Part shown: piece after piece, positions 6,419-45,235 of the stretch
Layout: the number at the start of each line of letters is the position of its first letter
How positions within the stretch are numbered: position 1 is the stretch's first letter
Origin: Perkinsus chesapeaki ATCC PRA-425
Lineage: Eukaryota > Protista > Perkinsozoa
Assembly (NCBI GenBank): GCA_013115145.1
Contig: JAAPAO010000253.1
Location: forward strand, 1-46,510
Length of the DNA: 46,510 nt
Direction: 5' to 3'
Translations under genes and position numbers: made by a program
The notes under the pieces: model-generated
Told to the model about the DNA's origin: nothing
What the model saw: only the letters and a program-made list of their open reading frames with translations
Databases searched by the model: none

Positions 6419-9134
6419 TTAAATACTCCTCACTTCTTCTGCCACAGTGCCGTCGTTCTCACCCTCGATTCTCGTCCAGACACCACCGACATTTCCACCT
6501 CGAGACTTCCACACTATCTCTTCAATCAACGGCAAACCGTCCTCCATTTCGGCGACCTCATCAGATGTCAAAGGATACGCAAATGAATACAAACCAGAAC
6601 TGCCCCACTTCACAGATACCTACAAAAAGTTTGAAGATCAATCGTATAACAATATATAATACTTACGCTACTACTTTATACCATTTCAAGATCTAATTTC
6701 TAAAAGCCTGGACCGAATTAATATGGCCCAAAACGCATTAGTTTCTTGGAAATGCTGTATAGTGACGCTACCACAGTGAAATTGAAAGTTCTGAATGATT
6801 TTCCCACAAGGCGAATAACCCACTTCTGATCGCCTGTACATGATAATAATAAATATATTGTCGAAACATCAAACATTATACATTGTCACCATTCACCTTC
6901 AAGTATCTACTTGGGACTCAACACCACCAACGCAAAACAGTACCCCGAAAACCAGGCCAGCGGGAAATGTCATCTCTTCACACCACCCTCCTTACACTCT
7001 TCCCTGCACTCAGCAGCTCGACCACCAATGGCTTTGCAACACCTCGAGCAGCATCAGACTTGGAGTCCATGGAGAAAGAGTCTTCACCTTCGATCAGGTA
7101 ATGCTTGCCCTTCTTATCAACATATGTACCCTACAGCTCGATAACACTGCGAACCCGATATAACCAACCCCACCTGGAGCGAGGCTAGGATAGGCTCAGT
7201 GCTCAACAGTGGTTCTGAACCCGAGCTGGAACGTGTTGTCTCCGTCACTGCGACCTTCTGAAAGAGAAATGCCACATTAATAAGATCTTGACAGTAGTTT
7301 GCCGATCCACACCAACTTGGCCCGGGAGGAACACTTTAACTTTGTTTCGGAGATCGCACTGATCGGAGCGGGGAGAACCCACCTTCTGTCAAGGTGTGAA
7401 ATTGCAGCTAGGGGCTTACGAGCAAATAATTTAGAACTAGGAAGTCGGTATTGATATCCACTTGAATGAACTGCTTCCAGCGTCCACTTGGGTACTTACG
7501 GTAGTACGTATAGAGTCTCAGTAATGCCAATTCCCAGCAAACAGTACATTGTTGAACATACAGAGCAAATGAGATTCTACCGAATCGAGGAGATATACCA
7601 AGTCAAAGACCAAATCCAAGTCTTATGTCCACTTATTCACCTCCGCATACCAACTCGCAATAATCTTCTCTCCCCTCCGTACCTCATCCCGTGACTTCTT
7701 CTTTTTACCCTTCCCCCCCTCTGGCCCCTTAGTGTACCGTCCTGTACCAATAACAGCACCATAGAGAGCTTCCTCGTCATCAGTGCCTTTTAGGGCGTTC
7801 CTGAAAACATTATATCTTCAAAATGAAGATATTAGTCTTTTCCCAAAGTGCCTTCAAGACATAAATTCGATATTCCAATCTCTTTAATTCGAATACTCTA
7901 ATCAGCGTTCACATGCTACAGGTTTAGTACTTAAATCTGCTTAGTTATTTACACGGATTGGAGGATTGTTAAGTTTTAATATTAGATATATGCATATCCT
8001 CGGCGCGGGCTCAATCCAAAAATGATGTCACGTCACCCCCTCCATCAGTGCGTTCATTGCAATCCTATCCGTCTTCCATCTCACGTCAAGTTCGTCAGTT
8101 GGGGATTTCGGGCTCGCTGGCGATGCCGACGACTACGCACTAACGAAGACTGGGGAATTTTTCCAGGCAAAAAACATTGCAAAATAACAAAGGCACTAAA
8201 AACAGTACCGTGGTTGTAATTTCGATATCAAACTTGAATCTTCCATATTCATTTTGGACGGACCATATCCTGACCGGCTCCCACATTGACACTATACGAG
8301 CATCAAACGCCTACAGGTGACGAATTTGATATCCTACTATTTTGACGAATAGAGATTGTGATTTTTTTGTAATCTAAACTGGCGGCAGATCTGCCGCCTA
8401 ATGCATTGATAGAATAACCGCCAAGCGATAGGATTGTCCGAGATAGTTTCAAACTTGACAGATTGACAATGAAATATATATCGACCAAAAGATTCCCACT
8501 TCCCTTAGCCAATACTACTTCCCCCGCAGAGCCTCCTCTTTCTCTATCTCCCTCGCAATCGCTTCGACCTTAGATCTTTGAGTGTCCGTCAAATTCTTAG
8601 GGACATCAGTAGTGTACAATTTCCAGTCAAAACTGGTCTGAACTCTGAAAAGGAGACAAGTTGCACAACACTCGTCTCCGAGAAAATTAGGTCGAATACC
8701 ACGAAGGGCTACAAGTCATCACAGCCTACAAAACCTCGGCGAGATGACCGTGAAGGGAGTTTTTATCTCACCAATAAACAGTGGGACATGATGTGGTACA
8801 CTCGCCAGTGAGAACAGTTTCAATATCAATACTGCCGAGAATGGGCCATCTAACGGCACCACTACTCTCTACCCGTCACCGGTTACTACCCAAATCGCTC
8901 CTCATTCAGCTTGAACTGATCCCAGTGAAGATTCTCAGTAGCAGAAAAATCCGCATCAGCTTCCTGCAATGAAGATCATCGAATAAGGCTTCGAGGCCAT
9001 GCCGAGGGTATTCCTACAGTGTTATCTTCCAGCCAGGTATTGTCCACACGCTTGAGGGCGTGCTCGTCCAGGTTCTCATCTGAGGAGTCTCCCCGCAGCT
9101 TCGAGAGGATCTCCTTATCGGTTCCTGAGGACAA
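6419..9134 (-). CDS. Multi-exon ataxin-2/Pbp1-like LsmAD-domain protein with a C-terminal uncharacterised LQG..WG..W domain
   Basis: Exons 9134-9018, 8963-8890 and 8644-~8519 splice in frame to WDQFKLNEERFG|VQTSFDWKLYTTDVPKNLTDTQRSKVEAIAREIE (LsmAD core). Exon 7800-7683 gives DEEALYGAV (LsmAD end motif). Exons 7130-6996 and 6619-6419 give GTYVDKKGKHYLIEG...|VSVKWGSSGLYSF...IVWKSRGGNVGGVWTR. Linkage of all exons is inferred. Confidence 0.7.
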
Positions 9135-9156: not shown

Positions 9157-9349
9157 CGGAGGTATAATAGAAAGGAGTATGATAGGAAATATGCTACTAG
9201 TGATACGGAGGAGATATAATAGAAAGGAGTTTGATAGGAACTATGTTACTAGTGATACGGAGGAGATATGATAGAAAGGAGTTTGATAGGAACTATGTTA
9301 CTAGTGATACGGAGGAGGAGATATAATAGAAATGAGTTTGATAGGAAAT
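9157..9349. repeat. 52-bp minisatellite, about 3.7 copies, intronic
   Basis: Unit atataatagaaaggagtttgataggaactatgttactagtgatacggaggag; copies begin at 9163, 9215, 9267 and 9322 (last spacing 55, extra gag). Confidence 0.95.
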
Positions 9350-10459
9350 GTACTTGACCCCACACGCGGTTATTACTGAAGACACTTCCCTTAGACTGGC
9401 GGCTGGCCAAACGAACATAGTTGGTAACACTTGACGGCAGCTTCCACCATACTGGTGTCTGAAAAACAATGCACTATGGCGGCAGAGACGTGGATCATCC
9501 ACGGTGGATGATATTATATACCATTGGCAAGTAAGGAGCGATAAACCAGTGATGACGTACACCGTAATAAACAATAACAGCCAAGAATGATATATAAAGT
9601 TAAAAGTATGTTGTTGAATTATTACACGCAGATGATTAATATAATAAAACGTATAATTATTATAAGAATCTAAGAGTAAGAAGTTGGCATGTAGTGTCCT
9701 AATACGGTTATTCGTAATAGCAGTTATAGTAGTATCATTCTCGATCAGTGTACTAGCCGGACTCAGTTACTCAGTCCCGCGAGTTTGGCGGCCCTGAGCG
9801 CTGCCTCAAAGGCCGGGCCGCGACCATGATGACTGGAAGGAGAAGAAGGTAGTATCATTCCTACTCGAGCCGAATGGGGGAAACCTGATTTTTTCCCTCC
9901 TCGACCTTCGGACCACTCAAAAGTAAAAAATGGCCAACTGATCATCAGCCGAAACAGAGACAGCAAAGAGGCGGAGTTTTTGCACAGCCGTTTCCACTGC
10001 ATTTGATGAATCAACATCAGCTTAATAAATAAATAGGAATGAGGTTAGTATAATGATAAGGTGATGATAGTAATAACCTAGTGCTTGGTAAAATATTATA
10101 TTATTAACAATGGGGCCAATTTCATCCGATAGATATTAATTATTATGATCATCAATGCATCACATGATCTTATAACATCCCCCACTGTGGGGCTTGATAC
10201 CCCGCTCACCTTCCTTGGACTCGCTATATACACGTTGACATAGTTGCTCCGCGAACTTGGTAACAAATACCACTTCCTTCGACCTTCGATTTCGGCAAGG
10301 TCCTAAACACATTGAAAACATCTCCCTCTGCAATCTTATAATATCTTTGATGAACCCTTCGCCGTAAATAGGCTATTCAACATTACACCGCAGATTGGCT
10401 AATATGAAGCTTTAAATGCCACTAAGATTCCCGAAACTTCCGATAAGGGAAATAGAAAT

Positions 10460-33350: not shown

Positions 33351-35249
33351 AATTGTGTGACACGATTTCTGTCACATGATGTACAGAAGTACATAGCATA
33401 TACAGCCCGACGCCATAAAATAGAATAATTCATTTTTTTATTTCTCCCTCAATGTTAAGGGTTGAAACTTTTAACATGAGTTTTATAAAGAGAATCGAAA
33501 ACATGACACTACATCGATTAACCGCTTTATGACTGACAGTTGATATTACACACGATGCGGATCTCATGTCACATACCGGGATGGGTACATCTGAATAATA
33601 TTAATAAATTGAAGTAAACCAGCTGAAGGTTGGTTATGAATTAAAGGAGATAATAGTATAAGTGATGACAATAATAGTATTGCAAATCTCATGTCACTTA
33701 CCGTGAGTGATGCTTCCTTGACATACAAAAAGGTTCAGTTCAGAATTCCGTTTCACGAAGAGGTTGAGTTTTTACGCATTTGCGTATCGAACGGGCACAC
33801 CCTGTACATACCGTGTATGTCATCGCGTCGTTCACAAAGGATTTAATGGCGCCATTATTGGGTCAATACCGACTTTTTCTCAGAGGTTCGCGCTTGTTCT
33901 GGAGCGTCGTAGATGATGGTGCAACTTGAATTTCTCGCGTTGAGCGGAAGCTGTGAACTAATCTCAATCTGTAAGGGTTCGGAGACGCGTTATATCTTAC
34001 CCATACCATCCTAGTCTATATAGAGAGTTGTTTCATTAGCAAGTAACATTTGTGTTCGTCAATTCATCAATGCCGATATTGCATTAAGTCGCCGTGTGCT
34101 GACAGCGGCCCTGGGGCAAAGTGCAATTCCAGCAAGTGTTGCAAATAAGATAACGCCGGCAGAGAGCTCTGCCAGGATTAGCCTCGTGGAGTTTCTCCAC
34201 CTTTCCCTAACAAAGTTTGGAAAGTGAACGCGCGAGTTTGATAATTATACTGACATTGTTACACGCAATAATATCAGCGGGCTACACAAGTCACTTGTTC
34301 ACAAGTGTGATGCGTACACAGAGTACGCCTTCAAGTTTGCCAGAGCTACATCCAAGCCTGATACCTTGCGGAAATGCTAGATCCAAGTTTGACAATACCA
34401 AAACTGCTATGTCCAATATCGTCGACACACAATTAATTTTGACAGCCCAACTTCTTTCTTGACAGGAAAGAAAGGCAGTTCAGCACTGATGTTATCAAGT
34501 AAGCGAAAAATGGTAAGAACCGCTCACTACGTCATAGCATGGGTTATGATGGCGAACGCTGATGCAACGGGGTGGGCTCAGTTACGGACACTCTATGGCA
34601 TACAGATCAAGAAATCTGATCAAGACGCCCTACAAGGCTGAATCGTAATGTGAATTATGTTATTCGGGTAACAATTTGTCCATTTCGTTACTAACAAACA
34701 CAACATCTATGGCATTGCCAAGAATTGAAGTTTAGACGGCTTCTTGGACTCGAAAAAGGCAAGGTAATGCCACAATGGCATATTGTACAAGTTAAGGACC
34801 CTGACATATCTTGAGGAAATATCTTGCTTCTTTAACAATGAAGTGAGCTATCATTGTAGGAGTCAAATGTTATGATGCTTGCACACGTCTCAGCCATATG
34901 ATCAGTGACAGGCTTCTGACTGAGACGAAGTGCATGTGGTTTGCTTAGATCAATAACATATCCGCCCGTCAACTGCTGGGTAGTTGCATCGTTATCGAGA
35001 CTCTCCCGCAGCTCCTCTTTCAGAGGGATGTGGAGGGCGTTGGAATACCATGCACTATGATTCTCCAGAACTTCCTTTGCTGGTGCTTTCCATAGACCTA
35101 ACCCCGCACTCTCGAGAACATAGAGCTCTCGCGTATCCGGGTCACGTGGGAATACTGTACCTTCTCCGGGTGGCGCTTGTCGAGGGAAGCCGCAGATTCC
35201 CAGTGTTAGTTTCTCCCACTCGGGTTTGACCTTCGCAGAAAGGTTACTA

Positions 35250-36367
35250 AGCACCACTCTTCCAGCAGCACTGCTGCGCCTGAACGGGCTCCGGTCATCG
35301 CGGAAGCTCCGTCTGTGGTAACCGAGACAAGCCCACTTTTAGGGACCTCCAGAGCCTCAAGCAGTTGTACAACTGCATTCTTCACAGCTGCGCCAGTGCC
35401 GTCGCCCTTCATGTCTCTCAAGCCAATGTAGCGTGTGCAACCCTGGGCTTTGGCGTATACAATAACTTGTTTAGTCACGGCGATGTCGGTAGTCTCATCG
35501 ACTGAGATTCCAAACTTTTTATTATGAAGCCATGCCTTCGTCTCGGCGACCTGATCGAGAATATCCCGCTGCACCGTGCCGTCTTGAAAGCCTATAGCCT
35601 TGAGCTGCAAGGCAGGCAGAGGCTTTTGAAAAGTACTACCTGTAGACTGTGTGCCGATTTGACGAATTCCCAGCCGTAATTTTTAGAGCGCCAGTGTGGG
35701 GTAATTTGAAGGCCGTGCTTTTCCGCCCATTGCGCTAGGGCTTCTGACTTATGAAGGGCGATCTCCTCGACGGCAAGGGTCACGGAAAGGTCAGCTAGAG
35801 GGGCCACGAGTTTTAACTCACCGTCCAGAAGGTCTTTCTGCTTCTCAACCACCTTTTTGAAGGCCAGTGTCACAGGCATCTGTTTGAACCTGTGCTTATT
35901 GCTATTGTCGATCGCTTTCTGATGGTCTGCGAGGTCAGATTTCTTGAATTTCTCCGGGTTGCAGACTCTCCATTCAGACCATTTTCCAGATGCCTCGTGG
36001 TCCATACACTCTCCGCAGCAATATTCGATCTTGCCAAACTGCTTGCGAGTGCGCAGCCAGAGAAAATCACCTTTGTATTTGGTTACGCAGGGCATTTAAC
36101 TTGTAGGTTATACGAAGGAATGGGGTATAACTGTTAGCTACTCACCGACAACGACCTTGCGAACAGAACTCTGGGTGACACCCAGTGAGGGGTACATGCG
36201 TGCATTTGATGGGTGTACATGCGTGCTGCTATCTTATGCGCGCGTGGCGCGCAAAAGAGTGATTTCAAGTCGCGGGAAAAATCAGGCCACGGGATTGTCC
36301 TATGGCGGATAAGTGCCGGTCGGCCGCGGAGCGGCCGAGTCGTAGCGGATCGTTAGAGGGAACACTG
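35250..36367 (-). mobile_element. 3'-truncated hAT DNA transposon: 5' TIR plus transposase N-terminal half with a 35-nt intron
   Basis: End CAGTGTTCCCTCTAA (reverse complement of 36353-36367) is a typical hAT terminus. ORF from ATG 36095 has a TTF-like Zn finger (FLWL...CCGEC...KFKKSDLADHQ...H); intron 35639-35605 joins it to ISVDETTD...SVTTDGASAMTG (first two catalytic Asp). The CxxH motif, Glu and dimerisation domain were not found. Confidence 0.85.
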
Positions 36368-36680: not shown

Positions 36681-39600
36681 ATGAGTCAGAGCCCTTGGCA
36701 ACTCAGAGTTCAGTCTGCTGCGTTTGCCCAACAACTTTCAATGGATACCTTGGCGACACTTCCTGCTGGTGCGCAGAGCTGGCATAAGAGCATATTGGCC
36801 GTATCCAGAACACATTTGGCTTATTTAAGCACTCTCTCGCTCAATGTGTAAGGATCCTCCAAACATCACTCTGCACATGTTCTACTAGAATACGTATATG
36901 TGACCTGGCGGCAGTGGAAACCAGAGGCCTCGAGTGGGGAAAAGCGAGAGATGAAATGCTTGCCGCAGTTATCAGGTAACCCAAAACATTCCCAAAATAT
37001 CCAAGCAGTAAGCTTGCATCTACTTGTGAATTCACTAAGCTGTAGTGCATGAGTATCATGTTTTATCCGTATATTTCACGGGTCTTCAACTGAGAACGTT
37101 GATCTCATCATCGAATGACGACATCAGCGAACATCGGCAATGATCAAGCGTTGCTATTCGTTGCCTGCGCACTTCACAACGCGATGCCTGCAACCCTCAG
37201 TCTGACGGCCTCAGGATTCAATTTCAGGAATCCTCATGCAGAGGAAGAATTTCTCATAGTCTCCAGTAGTGGGAGATCGCAGTTGGTTGAAGTAAAGGAC
37301 GGTGAGCTACCTCAGCCCGTACCAGGAAAGGTTCGCAATAAGCAGGCCGACTCATTCCAAGTCCCACGGCAAAGGAATCATTTGAGATAACTATGCCGGC
37401 AGGCTCGACCTCGAAGGGCGCAGCTGTGCCAGAGATTCTCATCGACTTCGACGCCGGTAGGGTAGCGGAACCGCGATTAACTTTATACGGCTATATCGGC
37501 CTGTAATAGGCTCCCGGTTTCTTTCAGTCGAGCAAGGGGTTCTGTGGTACTATCATAACACTGACTCTGGGCAACATCAGCTACGCCATAGGAAGGTTCA
37601 TGATCATGGTGAGCTTCGGTTGAGCCATTGATGAGGAAGAAGCTTTCTGTCCGTCAATAACTGAAATGCTCCTGATTGGTTCAATAGAAATTTGTCCCTT
37701 CGACAAAGATATCAGAGTGAGTTAAGCGGTATTCGACAGCCTACTACATTGGGCTGCCACGCTGCTTTCCACACCGCTGGGGAATCGGTTCAGTTTTGAG
37801 AAATCCTCAGGAAATCTTTATCAAGATTGTTACTAAATAGAAATTGCTGAGACTCGAGTAGCAGCATATTTCTGAAACTAATTGGTATTGCAAATACATT
37901 CGCCTCATCACATGTACTGTCCCAGGGACAGTGTCCCTAGTAGGGACTCCCTACTAAGAATGCCTTAGTCCCCGTCATTCCGTACGACTGCAACAGTTTG
38001 AACCTTTTGTTGACGTGTTGAAGTAATAACCAATGAACCTGTCAGGTTCATCGCCAGTAGAGAGATCCTTCTCTCTTTCTACTCCGGACTCGGGGTAGGT
38101 CGAGTCCCAGTATACCTCCTATATATAGAGGCACAGGTCGCCTACGAACAGAGCTGCCACCGACCTCCTCAGACCGCTGAAGAGTTTCGGCGATGGAGGA
38201 TCGTCCCCACACGCGGTGTGACTGCTCATCATAGATTTTCAGCCAGATTTTCAGCCTTGCGGGGGAAATGAGTTTCTGTAGACCGTAATGCGTCCCCACC
38301 ACGCCCGACGGAGATCGATCGCATTCGGCTGGTCAAATGGTGGCGTTACATTGATGACTGTAGAGGTCGGGGAGAGAACTCTAAGTTGCTCCCGAGGAGT
38401 AAGAATACTGACATCCAAGATGGCTGTTGGAATGTGACACCGTCACATTAGACGACTATAGGCTACTAGACTAGTAGTACTAGTTGCTGTTATTTAACAT
38501 GTTGATCATTGACTTGAATAGTTAGTTTCAGCTAAAATTTAATGATTATGACGAAATTAGTGATTTTATAATTAAAATCGTAAGTAAGGTATGTTTTAGT
38601 AAAATGGTGACTGTTGCACCGCCACCATTGTGACGCTCCGTTGCCGTCAGTATGTCGAGACGACGGACGGTAGAAAATTCGCACAACTGTTGGGGAAGAT
38701 TTGTGGCCAAAGAAAAGTTTCGATAGAAAACTTTTATCGATAGCATCAATAGTTATTACATTGCCGGGCTTTGAACTGAATCAGTTACTGATACTGGTTG
38801 TAATCATTGAGTACACATTTCCGCACTAGATTTGGTCCAAATCATTTGGACATCAGCGTCAGGCTTCAGCGGTCTGCTTCCATCACTGTACGATGATCCT
38901 GACTCCTCTTCTTCTCAGTCGTCAGTAGTGGACCTGGCTTTTGACCCTCTCTCTACTTGCTACCTAATCGTCGCCTACGGCAGTGGCGAACTCAGCATGC
39001 TGGATATGAGCTCCACTGGTCTAGCAACCCAAGTGAGCACCACGCGAGAGAATCGCTAATGCCATATTAGGCATGCCGATTCCAAAACGCCAAGGCGCCG
39101 ATAAGGTCAATATCCTGGCAATGTGGCTCGCGCGGTCCAGGGAGCTTTTTCACGGCGAGCGGCGAGGGCTCAACTATCCTGCAGCTGTGGAATGTCAGCA
39201 AACAGTCACCCATTGAAGAGATAAAGGTAGCTGACAGGCCCCCTAGTGGATACTACTGCTAGCATACATTCTAAAGGTACATAAGAACGCGAGTTGTAAT
39301 ATAGCTTCATGTGTTCCCGGCGATGACAGCAAGTAATCGAAGCCTCCTCCTCCTACGCCTGTCTGCTCTTCTTCGTGCTGCTGCAGGGTTGTTACCAGCC
39401 TGCGAAACGGCGCGGTAGAAATTGTCGATGTTAAGACGAGAAGCGTCAGAGCAGTCTGTGGATCAAGTGACTTCGCCCGTGCTGCCAGGTTTTTACCGTG
39501 TCCAGGTCACCGCGAGACCGTCTTCGACTGTTGTTTCCATCCTAGAGATCCTAACCTATTTTGTACGGGAAGCTATGATGGAACTGTCCGGCTGTGGCGC

Positions 39601-42600
39601 GTTAAATATGATATAAATGCTGGAGTTGAAAGTACAGCGGAAGTCATTGCCGAGATGGTATGAATCTTCTCATTCTTACTAGAAATTGAAAACGTAAAGA
39701 AACATTCCCGCTAGAAAATTCTAGCGGTCATAACTTATGACTCATAAGCGTAAACTGAATAACTATAGAGACTCGGTGCCATAGGGTCGGTGTTAACAGG
39801 GGGCTATGATAGATACGTCGGATCTCCTATAGTATCAAACTGCCGCAACTGCGAGCATTATCGTCTAATACGGCTCGTTATGTTACGTACATTTTTAGTG
39901 TTCAAAGTAGAGTGATGATTATTGGAAACTAATAAATCATTGTCAAAGCGGCCGTTGTCTGCTGTGATAAGACGTATAACATATATCATCTTTCGTTGTA
40001 TTCTTGGACCTGAACCTCATGTCAGAGCACTGCTTGTAAGGACGGTGGTGGAGCCCAAGCAGAGAACGGTATCAGCAGATCAATAGTGTAAGGTATATAG
40101 AGCCTTTGGTATAGAATGCATCCTGTATATTCTGTACAATACAGCAGTCTATACAGTGCTTCCTCTACCGTATGCTTGTTCATCTTTCCAACAGTTACCC
40201 CATGTATCCAGCCCGTATATCTTGGACTCTCTGTGGCTTTCGAGCATCGAAAAACTTCATGGTTCTCTTCTATGCTCTTCTAGGTATTCCAGGAAAGCTC
40301 CGTCTTGGGGTTGTTTACAAATTGTATATTACCGTCCATCTGTTTTCTATTGCCATTTGCATACGTGTACTGTTATTACACCACAAATGGTGGCACAGAA
40401 GGCTCTCCCACATCCCACTATCAGATACGGTATAGATTTTTCGTTTTGTGGTAAGAAGGTTGCGGGGGTGACAAGCCGAGGAGAGTTGCATGTCTGGCGC
40501 CTTGACACAGGTCAGGACCGCCGCACGCTGTTTATGATCGTTTTCTTTTGAGCTGGGGGAAGTTTCGGGAAGCGCCTGGAATCGGAGTCTCGGATGCACT
40601 TTATATGTTAACAAACTCTGCTTGCTAATTAGCAACTTGAAGTATTAAATACTGAATATCCTTTGTTTCATTATCGATATTGAATATAAAAGTTTAAATT
40701 ACCAATTATATGTTATAATCGATATGATTTATATCGGTATTGTTCACACTTCCATAACTATAGAGTATATAGTGGAGAGGCTAACTAAGCCTTCTTCGGC
40801 GGCGTTAGGCTATAAACTCACACACACTTAGCTGCGGAGCTGCATTGACGCTAATACACATATTTCAAAGAGTATTCTACGGGCTCGTTCCGATCCCCTG
40901 AAATTGTCCTTATGGGATTTCGGGTATTGGAGCCTATTTTATATTCTCATTTGACCTTGGTTTTTCGAGCTGCTCCATTTTATTCATTTTCCTCTCAGGG
41001 CATAAGGTTCTTTTCGTCCCACCATTGAACGTGTACAATCCAAGTAGCTTCCGAGTCTCCTGGCTCAAGGAATTCCACAACAGGTGCACAATCTCAGATG
41101 TGATCGGGCCTTATTATAAGACCCTTATAATTCTTATTACTACTATATCGTTTTTAAAGTCTAGGACATCTGCTTGGACCTGCCATGGGCTTCAATATTC
41201 ATGTGCTTGTTAAACAGTTATATAATGAAATGAGACCAATAGTTTGGCTGGCTTAGCTCTTGCTTGCATTTTGCGATATTTTCGATAGCACGTGCTCTTT
41301 TTGGTCAGCCCTCGCAGTGGCTGGATCGCCTTCGGCCGTACCGACTTCAACGCCGTTATCGTTGACCAGCTTGAAGCAGGCCGTGTTATTGCCACCATAG
41401 AGTAGCTCTAGGCTTATTGAGCTCCATTTGACAGTTCGCCTTCAGTCACCGCAGTCCTGTTATCGGCATAGCTTGGAAACCATTCGTTGAAGGACTTTCT
41501 CCTCAAGTTTGCACTGCCGCTCAAGACGGGACGGTCCGAGTCTGGGCCATCTCGGCCTCGACAGGAGTAACCAGTCTACACATCGCAATCAATCAACAAA
41601 CCTGTTTTGCCAGACAGTATCCCTTGCTCACTGTCTTCGGGGCCACGAGGGCCGAGCGTTCAACGTCCTTCCGAATCCACGTCACGGCGGTATCATCGCA
41701 TCTGGCGGTGACGATTCCACTGTACACATTGCTTGTCCAGTGGACCGTGCATATCTTTCCAGGTTAGAGTGTGGCGGGTGTCTGATTCACGATGCCTTCA
41801 AGTCCTCCGAGGTCATACTTCTAACGTTCGTGCCCTGGCATGGCACAGCGAGCTGCCCACAGTTCTCCTGTCTGGCAGCTGGGACAGTATCCTCAACCTA
41901 GCCAGAGCTAACTCAGTTCCATGGCAGGCACAATAAGGATTTGGGACGCGGCGATGGGTTGTTGTTTGCATGTTCATCGAGACCATGCAGCTGACGTCTA
42001 CGGTATCGCATCCCATCCGCTCAGACCATTTATCTTTATAAGTATGGCGGAGCTTACATTCAACTGTGAAGGAGTGTGCCAGGCACGTCCCGAGATTCAA
42101 CCATTAAATTCTCCACCACAGAATGGCTCGGGCGCCTCCCATTCATGTGCTCTCTGCTGAGTGATGATCCCAAAACAGAATTGGCGAAGTTCATATCAGA
42201 CGACAAAGACGCTATTAGAGAAGCGTTTGATAACGTAGGTCTGCATTACTTGGCTGCTTGCGTCCCCGGCGGTGGGATGTTCCCTCTATCCCATCTATGC
42301 ACGACCATGAGAACACTCCGTGTCAGCCCCAACCTGCTGAACCCACAAACTCACTCGACACGGTTTACTTCCTGTCCCTTCATGGTACCGGGTCAGCTGA
42401 TCTCCTCCAAAGTCTGCAGAGTCGGGGTGGCCAGGACCTTCTTCAAGACAAAATCGACATAGTAGGGGCCGTAGGGACGCTTAGAAGCCACCGTTCTGGC
42501 AGTTGTCATTCTTTGCCTACCGCAAAGGCATCGAGGACCTAGCAGATGTGATACGAGGCATTCTCGGGAGAACGCGGCGTCATGATGGTCCCGGGGAGTA

Positions 42601-43767
42601 CGTCCACGAGAGTGATCTCCAAGAGACCTGTGCAAGTCGCGCATTCGATGCTCTAGCGGCTGCCTCGGGCAAGCGGTCCATCGTTGGTACGGACAGGTCG
42701 AGCGTATCACTCGCAACTGGTCAAAAGGTGTCGACGCGACGCGACTAGATCCTACTAATATGGCATCTTGGCCGTCCATGACCGCCAGACCATCACACGA
42801 CCAGGCCGCCGAGTTGTTCCTGGTCAGTGGGGATTTCAAGAACTACTGCGAAACCGTGGCTAGCTGTGGCAAATGGGAGGCAGCGATCGCTGCAGCCCCC
42901 GCTGTTTCACTGCAGTACGTTCGCGCTCCGAGTGTGTGATGCAGACCCATTCAAGATACTGGCAGCAATTGTCGCGACGATACGCAGATTTTATACTAGC
43001 ATCTCGGGCACTATTAAGCAGCACTGGTGAAAGTGCAGCTCCGGCGCTGCCATACCTCATGGCTTCTGGTACGTGTGGAGTCACATTGAGCTCAGATACG
43101 AATTACCGACGCGTTAGGCTACAATTATCGTGGAGGCGTTGTCTTGTGAAGTTCGATTATCTCTCGTTCATTGTGATCGATACCCGCACAACGATTCCCG
43201 GAATGGAATGTACTTCAGGATGTTCCAATGAAGGCGTTGAGCTCCTGCTCAACCAAGAGAGCCACACTCTCTCCGCTGTGACATTGGGAAAGACGGTGGC
43301 TGACGGCCGAGTGCCTGCAGTTTGCAATGGTGTTAGCGTCCCTCCTGTCGAAGCTGGTGATCGATCCCAGTTCCTCGAGGTGGTCACTTGACACTCGCTT
43401 TTTCCAAGTGCCTTCGATTTGTATAGCATAGCCTCCTTTTCTTAGGCATCTGGCCGTATTGCAACAAGTCTAGCTCGCTCTTCCTGGACACGACTCCAGG
43501 CCTGTGGCATCCTCCTTGGCGCGGAGGATGTTGAGGGCGCTCTAGCTCTACTATGCACTTCTGCGGATTCTTTGATCTACTGTGGCGTGAGAGATCTAGT
43601 GCCATATACAGTAGGATGGACGATTAGCCTATTTCTCTGAATGGCTCCTCCAACAGGTCTGCGCACCATCGAAGGAAGTTACGGCCGGGTTGATCAGGAT
43701 CCGCGGAGAGTTGAAGAAGGAGGGTCGAGGAGTAACCTCGGATGCCTTACAGCAGCTTATGAACTAA
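36681..43767 (+). CDS. WDR17: WD repeat-containing protein 17 orthologue, many exons
   Basis: Motifs in WDR17 order: LPAGAQSWHKSILAV..LAYLSTLSLNV; AFDPLSTCYLIV; SISW...PGSFFT...LQLWNVSKQSPIEEIK; GHRETVFDCCFHPRDPNLFCTGSYDGTVRLW; GHEGRAFNV...IIASGGDD; GHTSNVRALAWHSELPTVLLSGSWDSTIRIWD; DHAADVYGIASHPLRPF...SRDSTI; YWQQLSRRYAD; LPYLMASG. Start may be 36681 or 36741; stop inferred. Confidence 0.85.
37916..37956. repeat. Three chained perfect palindromes with 1-nt centres (intronic)
   Basis: actgtccc-a-gggacagt; gtcccta-g-tagggac; tagtaggga-c-tccctacta. Confidence 0.95.
40783..40834 (+). repeat. Dispersed ~50-bp repeat, copy 2 (see 1749-1797)
   Basis: Direct alignment to copy 1; lies within the WDR17 gene span, presumably intronic. 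Confidence 0.6.
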
Positions 43768-43864
43768 CTCGTGCCATGAACACCGAATCTATTTTCGTGT
43801 AAAGTTGGCTCTGAGTCTTCAATGCAAGGGTATTCCCCTTAGGGTAAAATCCCTCCGGGCAAGC

Positions 43865-44124
43865 ACCGGGTAACCCGGTCCGGGTTTCCGCCTGCCGATG
43901 TTTCTCCGAAAGGCATTACTCTCGTCACCATAATCTCGTAGGACAATGCTCCAGAAGTAATGGCGTTACGAATCGTAACTTTCTGGATAATCGTAACTTA
44001 CGATTATCCAGAAAGTTGAACCCTCATCCACATCTGCATACAAGAATCTTGTATAGAATCTTGTCACAAGATACCTCACTAGACCGTTACGGTCTAGTAG
44101 AGGATACGGTCTGACCGTATCCTC
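43865..44124. repeat. Array of seven distinct perfect palindromes, each with a 1-nt centre
   Basis: 43865-43879 (15 bp), 43965-43979 (15), 43977-44017 (41), 44038-44054 (17), 44058-44072 (15), 44078-44098 (21) and 44100-44124 (25), each checked base by base. Confidence 0.95.
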
Positions 44125-45235
44125 GCTTTCAAAGTAGAAGAACCGTTTCACATGTAAAATCACATTTAGTGTCTCGGTGACACGTCCTTTCCAGAATCGG
44201 CAAAAGCGTACACTGCCAGAAATACTCTTTTTGCACGATCCGGGAAGCTTCAAGCTACAAGTATCCGGCATATATCTAACACGCCACGCAATGAAGATCA
44301 CCAGCACTTGAACGATCCATGATGTACCTTGTCATACTGTTAACCATCAGGGAACTCAAGAAACCAAAGTGAGGCAAGAAGACAGTAACACACTAACATC
44401 AGTACTAGCGTCGAGCTGAGCTAAGGTTTCATTGTTGTGCAACTCACACAACAGCACATACATACCATCATCATGATGGCATCATGGTCATACCCTCACC
44501 GTAGGGGCTTCCCTCTTGCAGCTCACCATTGGGTGTGACACATCCGGTGTGTGTACACTGAAATAAGTCATGTTGCCAATAAGGCGGACTACGCCGGGTC
44601 GAGGCTTATGTGCCGAGCTCCAGGTATTGGTACGGAGTAGATTTAACCCAAGTCTGACTCCTGAGGGTGGACCAGCGACATGTTTGCACTGCCAACCATC
44701 ACGCAATCAACGATGCCGGAGAAGATATCCCAAAGGCTTATGGGAATATGATGGGGTGCCACCTCAGGGGTGGTATAAATTCGGATAGCTTGCAGCGTCA
44801 CCCTACTAGGGTGACCCTTGTTCTTGAGACTGCCTAAGCGTCTCCCAAGTTCTAATATAGTCGTACTCAGGGCTGAGTCCTGGCTCATTCCGCGTTAGCT
44901 GCTCAAAGCGAATTTTGCCTTCCATTGCGTGGATTGATATAAGCATATTGTAAGATGGATAAAGCTGTATTATAGTAACGCTCCTTTGGTATTCTAACCA
45001 GCAACTTAGAAAACTCAAGACGCTCGGTATTAGTACTGGATACGGTTAAAATGAGGTGTCAGTAAAAGAGCGAATGTCGAGAATCGAATAGAATCAACAT
45101 AAGCCACCTCATCATCTGAATATCTTTGATATCAAAAAGACTCCTGAGCATCATAGTGTGCACTAGCCTTGAGGAACAACTCCTCAACGGCCACCATAGT
45201 GATAATGAGAATCATTCATACTGCGGAGTTCGCCC

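Follow-up and report, generated by a model that had tools for sequence, protein, structure and literature searches.

What process leaves several different perfect palindromes side by side in a short stretch of non-coding DNA? The question is raised by positions 43865-44124 of a stretch of 46,510 nucleotides from Perkinsus chesapeaki, the whole of which is called the window here. This 260-bp array lies in non-coding DNA beside a WD40-repeat gene, whose exons are found at approximately 41.5-42.2 kb on the + strand; this agrees in part with an earlier placement of the array directly downstream of a putative WDR17 gene. A spurious ORF that spans the array has no counterpart on record. A preliminary description had listed seven perfect palindromes with a 1-nt centre, and all of them are present, with the arms and single central bases as written, at 43865-43879, 43965-43979, 43977-44017, 44038-44054, 44058-44072, 44078-44098 and 44100-44124. 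The arms of the palindrome at 43977-44017 are 20 nt long. An eighth palindrome, absent from that description, is located at 43872-43886 and overlaps the first (43865-43879) by 8 nt.

The folding analysis showed that the array, taken as single-stranded DNA, folds at -61.5 kcal/mol, compared with -26.3 ± 3.4 kcal/mol for 200 dinucleotide shuffles (z = -10.2). This agrees with the earlier statement that the palindromes are not a product of chance. The statement that the array is neither a tandem repeat nor CRISPR also held, because Tandem Repeats Finder and a direct-repeat search detected no tandem or direct repeats in 43865-44124. A tandem-repeat or CRISPR-like array was rejected, as no unit is repeated at regular spacing there. 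Palindromes with a single central base are a trait of the whole window, in which perfect palindromes with arms of at least 7 nt number 37 with a 1-nt centre, 6 without a centre and 7 with a 2-nt centre. Many of the 1-nt-centre palindromes form overlapping chains.

The eight palindromes of the array form four adjoining pairs, each of which rebuilds an 8-bp target-site duplication. The left 8-mer is read as the last 7 bases of the left flank arm followed by the complement of the left centre, and the right 8-mer as the complement of the right centre followed by the first 7 bases of the right flank arm. Scar 1 (43865-43886) consists of two 7-nt-arm palindromes offset by 7, with the duplication ACCGGGTT recovered at 8/8 positions and a net gain of 14 bp. 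Scar 2 (43965-44017) has arms of 7 nt on the left and 20 nt on the right, which overlap by the 3 nt AAC; its duplication is GTTACGAT (8/8, net gain 32 bp). Scar 3 (44038-44072) has arms of 8 and 7 nt with 3 filler bases between the palindromes, and its duplication TACAAGAT is recovered at 7/8 positions (net gain 26 bp). Scar 4 (44078-44124) has arms of 10 and 12 nt with 1 filler base between them, and its duplication is AGACCGTA (8/8, net gain 31 bp). None of these four features has a strand. The preliminary description had noticed that the palindromes come in related pairs with a common core; this was borne out, and the core is the target-site duplication.

The centre bases follow a rule. Of the eight centres in the array, seven are complementary to the base formerly adjacent to the inserted element, that is, to the outer base of the duplication. 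The eighth, the right centre of scar 3 at 44065, is a C in the window and does not fit, whereas a second isolate has a T at this position, which fits. T is the original base of the duplication TACAAGAT, and with it scar 3 also scores 8/8. When all neighbouring palindrome pairs in the window were scored in this manner, 11 reached 8/8, one reached 7/8 and all others stayed at or below 4/8, a bimodal distribution. Collapsing the four scars to their 8-mers removed 103 of the 260 bp, so that scars make up 40% of the array. After the collapse, the target sites of scars 3 and 4 are at most 8 bp apart.

Scar 1 represents the canonical scar, which is 22 bp long and comprises two 7-nt-arm palindromes offset by 7. 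Counted by duplication length, the canonical form in the window numbers nine at 8 bp, one at 7 bp and none at 6 bp or 9-12 bp. It did not occur in 100 Markov shuffles. A second P. chesapeaki contig (L005, 17.9 kb) contains six canonical scars, all for 8 bp only. The centre rule was examined in these 15 scars (9 in the window and 6 in L005) by a search that fixed nothing but the core (6 nt, its reverse complement, 6 nt), so that both centres were free to vary. All 30 centres were complementary to the outer bases; the chance expectation is 1 in 4 for each centre, and the probability of this outcome by chance is approximately 1e-18.

The target sites themselves showed only a weak enrichment for nTnnnnAn, the consensus of classical hAT elements: 7/18 have T at position 2, 8/18 have A at position 7 and 4/18 have both (p ~0.03). 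In the 15 canonical scars, the duplication never starts with T and ends with A only once. This first- and last-base rule is broken in two of the three long-armed twin scars. The bias may reflect a target preference or a constraint on the annealing ends, and the numbers are small.

The preliminary description had read the array as a record of iterative fold-back synthesis at a hotspot. Repeated and independent hairpin events at one spot are retained from that reading, whereas synthesis by fold-back fails to explain the geometry. In a transposon-free process of fold-back or template-switch synthesis, 3′ ends would snap back at a fragile site and copy their own strand. Such a process yields inverted repeats, a fragile site would suit the clustering at one spot, and no transposon is present at any site of the array. 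However, neither an 8-bp direct duplication nor a fixed geometry nor a centre rule follows from it, and it is set against the exact 8-bp specificity, the complementary centres (30/30) and the separation of pair scores (8/8 against ≤4/8). Snap-back priming also needs a loop of several bases. The templated insertions and snap-back products of polymerase theta resemble the array in their short inverted duplications at repaired breaks and in their use of microhomology, but they require no 8-bp direct duplication and have no complementary single-base centre. We consider fold-back or template-switch synthesis very unlikely as the origin of the array.

We conclude that the array very probably consists of four footprints, left independently when hAT-type cut-and-paste transposons were excised from single-copy non-coding DNA beside the WD40-repeat gene. 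The 8-bp direct duplication presupposes insertion at a staggered cut in the target, and the inverted copy between the duplicates presupposes flank hairpins. Where a centre is the complement of the base beside the insert, one strand of the hairpin must have been shorter by 1 nt, which points to the hAT pathway. Zhou et al. 2004 reportedly placed the first nick of Hermes 1 nt inside the flank. From the footprints we infer the element itself, the nuclease that opened the hairpins and the pathway that joined the ends.

The proposed series of events would start with an element that inserts and duplicates 8 bp of the target. On excision, the transposase would nick one strand 1 nt inside the flank, the 3′-OH of this first nick would attack the other strand at the element end, and each flank would thus be closed into a hairpin whose tip carries one unpaired base. 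Host enzymes would then open each hairpin 7-20 nt from the tip and join the ends. An opened hairpin would become a perfect palindrome whose centre is the complement of the base abutting the element. Opening at least 8 nt from the tip would leave 3′ tails that are complementary over 8 duplication-derived nt. Annealing of these tails, together with trimming, would give the 22-bp scar regardless of the opening point, as in scar 1. Joining through the 3-nt microhomology AAC (scar 2) or with filler of 3 bases (scar 3) or 1 base (scar 4) would allow both long palindromes to persist. For scar 3, we speculate that the hairpin was opened to a 5′ overhang and filled in to give T at 44065, and that the C of the reference is a later transition; the T lends weak weight to this explanation, as two of the four bases would have fitted.

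Excision of Ac/Ds proceeds through a flank hairpin that is offset by one nucleotide, opened at a distance from the tip and rejoined, and the arms of the products reach 20 nt in Saccharomyces cerevisiae (PMC5873905). Ac/Ds footprints and the array are alike in keeping copies of the 8-bp duplication, in palindromic (P-nucleotide) insertions centred on the complement of the element-adjacent base, and in junctions with microhomology or filler bases (PMC5873905). The footprints of TcBuster also agree with the hAT excision signature (PMC3499496). The Ac/Ds footprints come from experiments with marked donor sites, whereas the array is natural, fixed, and unusually long and dense. The array differs further in its dominant product, which is one stereotyped 22-bp form that keeps the full inverted copy of the duplication.

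Sealed flank hairpins are also formed by other enzymes of the transposase type. In V(D)J recombination by RAG, and in Transib, off-tip opening of such hairpins leads to palindromic additions, as is proposed here. The RAG and Transib hairpins are symmetrical and lack the 1-nt offset, whereas the scars of the array are offset. The P tracts of V(D)J joints are usually 1-4 nt long, and Transib elements make 5-bp duplications. The even form without an offset (S-rc(S)-S), which would be expected of the Mutator or Transib type, was found zero times for duplication lengths of 6-10 bp. Scars with a 5-bp duplication numbered 2 in the window against 0.7 expected, and scars with a 9-bp duplication were not found there; neither the even-type nor the 5-bp scars are enriched in the window.

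The Mutator-like element Muta1 resembles the array in its flank hairpin intermediate and its long (8-9 bp) duplications (PMC5499845). In the Muta1 hairpin, unlike in the array, each flank strand is complete (43 + 43 nt), so that the 1-nt offset is missing, and excision is precise in more than 90% of cases (PMC5499845). The scars could thus in principle come from another hairpin-forming cut-and-paste superfamily, Mutator-like, Transib or one so far undescribed, since flank hairpins occur with MULE, Transib and RAG as well, and duplications of 8-9 bp are known from some MULEs (PMC5499845). Besides the missing offset and the precise excision of Muta1, the lack of 9-bp and even-type scars and the low count of 5-bp scars speak against a Mutator or Transib origin, and the window contains coding sequence that is derived from a hAT element. 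An origin in another superfamily is therefore improbable in our view.

The hAT-derived sequence is a truncated hAT-superfamily transposase gene at 35206-36095 on the minus strand. Its N-terminal part is rich in Cys and His, and an RNase-H-like part can be aligned with the transposase core (DUF4371 region). The gene belongs to three consecutive minus-strand ORFs within 34832-36095, 8 kb upstream of the array. The middle ORF (35206-35610, minus strand) reached ESM Atlas scores of 0.92-0.94 to clusters annotated with FAM200-ZBED5_RNase-like and DUF4371, and an exhaustive HMMER search found 195 relatives at E ≤ 0.001. Ten of these relatives were scanned: seven carried DUF4371, the hAT dimerisation domain or both, and three carried both together with a zinc finger. 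The pairwise alignment with one of these three full-length proteins gave E = 3e-14 over a stretch that spans the DETTD and TDGA motifs. Pfam gave no matches for the ORFs of the remnant, and the homology was found only through ESM Atlas and HMMER. The nearest relatives on long contigs belong to metagenome assemblies and added no information. After the end of the reading frame, no match was found for the rest of the catalytic domain or for the hAT dimerisation domain, which indicates that this copy, the only hAT gene seen in the window, is truncated.

The relatives of the first ORF are 65% identical in P. olseni and 49% identical in P. chesapeaki (L005). They lie in unrelated, non-syntenic gene neighbourhoods, which indicates that the gene is dispersed; the P. 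olseni relative is at a contig end. The coding DNA of P. olseni is only about 75% identical, so an intergenic alignment with this species would probably fail. The truncated hAT transposase gene is a candidate source of the scars. No resident element came out of a scan of the window for inverted ends combined with a duplication of 7-10 bp. An 18-nt inverted repeat (34786-34803 and 36088-36105, 15/18 matched) exactly brackets the remnant, with the inner ends CCCTG and CAGGG and no flanking 8-bp duplication. It may be due to chance or may be the unproven remains of the element ends. Three canonical scars were observed within 410 bp at 7044-7446 of L005, directly upstream of the P. chesapeaki paralogue (7452-7909).

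The reality and copy number of the array were assessed in public sequencing runs, which were compared over 38800-44700 of the window. A 704-bp contig over 43663-44366 is identical to the window in run X1, which is possibly the source sample. Runs X2 and X5, which belong to a different sample and a different study, contain the same contig apart from C>T at 44065. This sole difference between the isolates is the centre base of a palindrome. Over 43922-44315, the contigs have the same depth as the neighbouring gene, the value for single-copy DNA. When the array was compared by BLAST with the window and with two other Perkinsus loci (75 kb of Perkinsus DNA), it matched only itself, and each of the four footprints is a unique sequence in single-copy DNA. 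The run contigs list no indel alleles over the array, all scars are common to both isolates, and neither an empty allele (the unscarred 8-mer) nor an occupied allele was found for the array sites in these two isolates. The stretch 38800-44700 is absent from the RNA runs of P. chesapeaki.

The preliminary description had considered that the array might be an artefact or one copy of an ordinary multi-copy element. The second possibility does not agree with the single-copy depth and with the lack of another copy in the DNA compared. A sequencing, amplification or assembly artefact could be imagined because inverted chimeras arise in amplified libraries. The array contig, however, was recovered from two samples of two studies at single-copy depth and with one substitution, and the structures obey a biological rule. 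The chance that the array is an artefact is negligible in our judgement.

Some contigs of the runs depart from the window close to the array. Contigs of about single-copy depth at 43053-43290 and 43556-43660 skip 236 bp and 103 bp, respectively. A 3525-bp contig fits 43663-43750 with 3 differences and then leaves the window sequence. These contigs may come from a paralogous segment, or from a second haplotype that carries indels and departs from the window immediately upstream of the array. On the other side, approximately 115 bp at 44338-44453 reach, in each of the three DNA runs, a contig depth of 20-40 times the single-copy value. Positions 44336-44338, 44380 and 44453 are points of divergence for many contigs, and 44381-44399 is missing from some copies. 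This segment is a multi-copy repeat; the window contains it only once, clear inverted ends are lacking, and Rfam gave no match.

Scars with mutated pairings were also counted. The 8-bp form with 1, 2 and 3 mismatches occurred 2, 10 and 10 times, against expectations of 0.02, 0.08 and 1.9, and the 7- and 9-bp controls gave far fewer scars with broken pairings. This tail, far above expectation, fits the neutral decay of old scars. That the scars decay like neutral DNA argues against a selected hairpin function, such as the multi-hairpin RNA, cruciform origin or resolution site that had been suggested for the array. Under selection, the hairpins would be RNA stem-loops of a 3′ UTR or terminator zone, or cruciform DNA sites. 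The array does fold far better than its shuffles, and it lies beside a gene end. However, the Rfam covariance models gave no match to the array at the gathering score and nothing real at permissive thresholds, and the 41-bp palindrome obtained only sub-threshold, generic matches to miRNA hairpins. The hairpins have no sequence in common, the same structures are scattered over the non-coding DNA of the window and L005, the mutated versions form a decay series, and a function would not explain the 8-bp duplication rule. Selected hairpin elements are accordingly highly improbable, and the suggested functions were not retained.

The window also contains 13 perfect palindromes that have a 1-nt centre, arms of 7-9 nt and no partner, against approximately 3 expected by chance. 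Their centres are at 1099, 1518, 1847, 4931, 13342, 13681, 17029, 23536, 27994, 32716, 36178, 38042 and 44806. They may be scars of one side only, the tail of the other side having been lost.

The neighbourhood of the array contains further scars, again without strand. A decayed canonical 22-bp scar with 2/14 pairings broken is located at 43826-43847, just upstream of the array. A perfect canonical scar with the duplication CCATCATG lies at 44465-44486 in the intergenic stretch of the array, and a canonical scar with one broken pairing at 44799-44820 is also close to it. Further decayed scars start at 44531 and 44752. The array and its flanking scars amount to about nine events in 1 kb. A second scar cluster is found at 37.9-39.7 kb, on the opposite side of the WD40-repeat gene. 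At 37917-37954, two canonical scars (starting at 37917 and 37933) overlap by 6 bp. Their target sites, CTGTCCCT and GTCCCTAC, are shifted by 2 bp relative to each other, which means that insertion was repeated at nearly one site.

Two variants were observed at 38774-38792 and 34285-34307. One is canonical in shape but has a 7-bp duplication. The other consists of the left palindrome, one filler base and then the intact 8-mer CACAAGTG, an arrangement that would fit a right hairpin opened at its tip.

The mechanism of hAT excision is textbook knowledge, and the array shows those features of hAT excision footprints that can be tested. The array is unusual in being preserved in a natural genome, in its long palindromic tracts, in the stereotyped 22-bp product and in its density. 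As a rule, excision footprints are observed singly, in reversion experiments. Literature searches in a limited collection found no description of such scars in Perkinsus.

These scars make past cut-and-paste activity measurable from sequence alone. Censuses of elements are blind to such activity because the element has left. Insertion hotspots beside genes can be measured in the same way, and the manner in which the host opens and joins DNA hairpins can be read in a protist whose repair is little studied. Perkinsus is a parasite of shellfish, and its non-coding DNA has kept the scars unusually cleanly and densely. Intergenic DNA can grow appreciably through such scars. Annotation of Perkinsus DNA should not take dense perfect hairpins as evidence of RNA genes, origins or assembly errors.

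We tentatively suggest, as a possibility that we hold doubtful, that a hAT family is still active or was active very recently, that it reinserts locally again and again, and that the non-coding DNA is built in good part from its scars. If this is true, the genome would be a countable and datable ledger of transposition and of its own break repair, in which hairpins are opened at least 8 nt from the tip and joined mainly by annealing of the duplication-derived tails. A more remote variant is that a domesticated, hAT-derived nuclease makes the breaks.

A tandem repeat was also observed elsewhere in the window. Its 52-bp unit is present in 3.6 copies at 9158-9347 with 92% matches, and it lies approximately 140 bp upstream of a canonical scar at 9489-9510.
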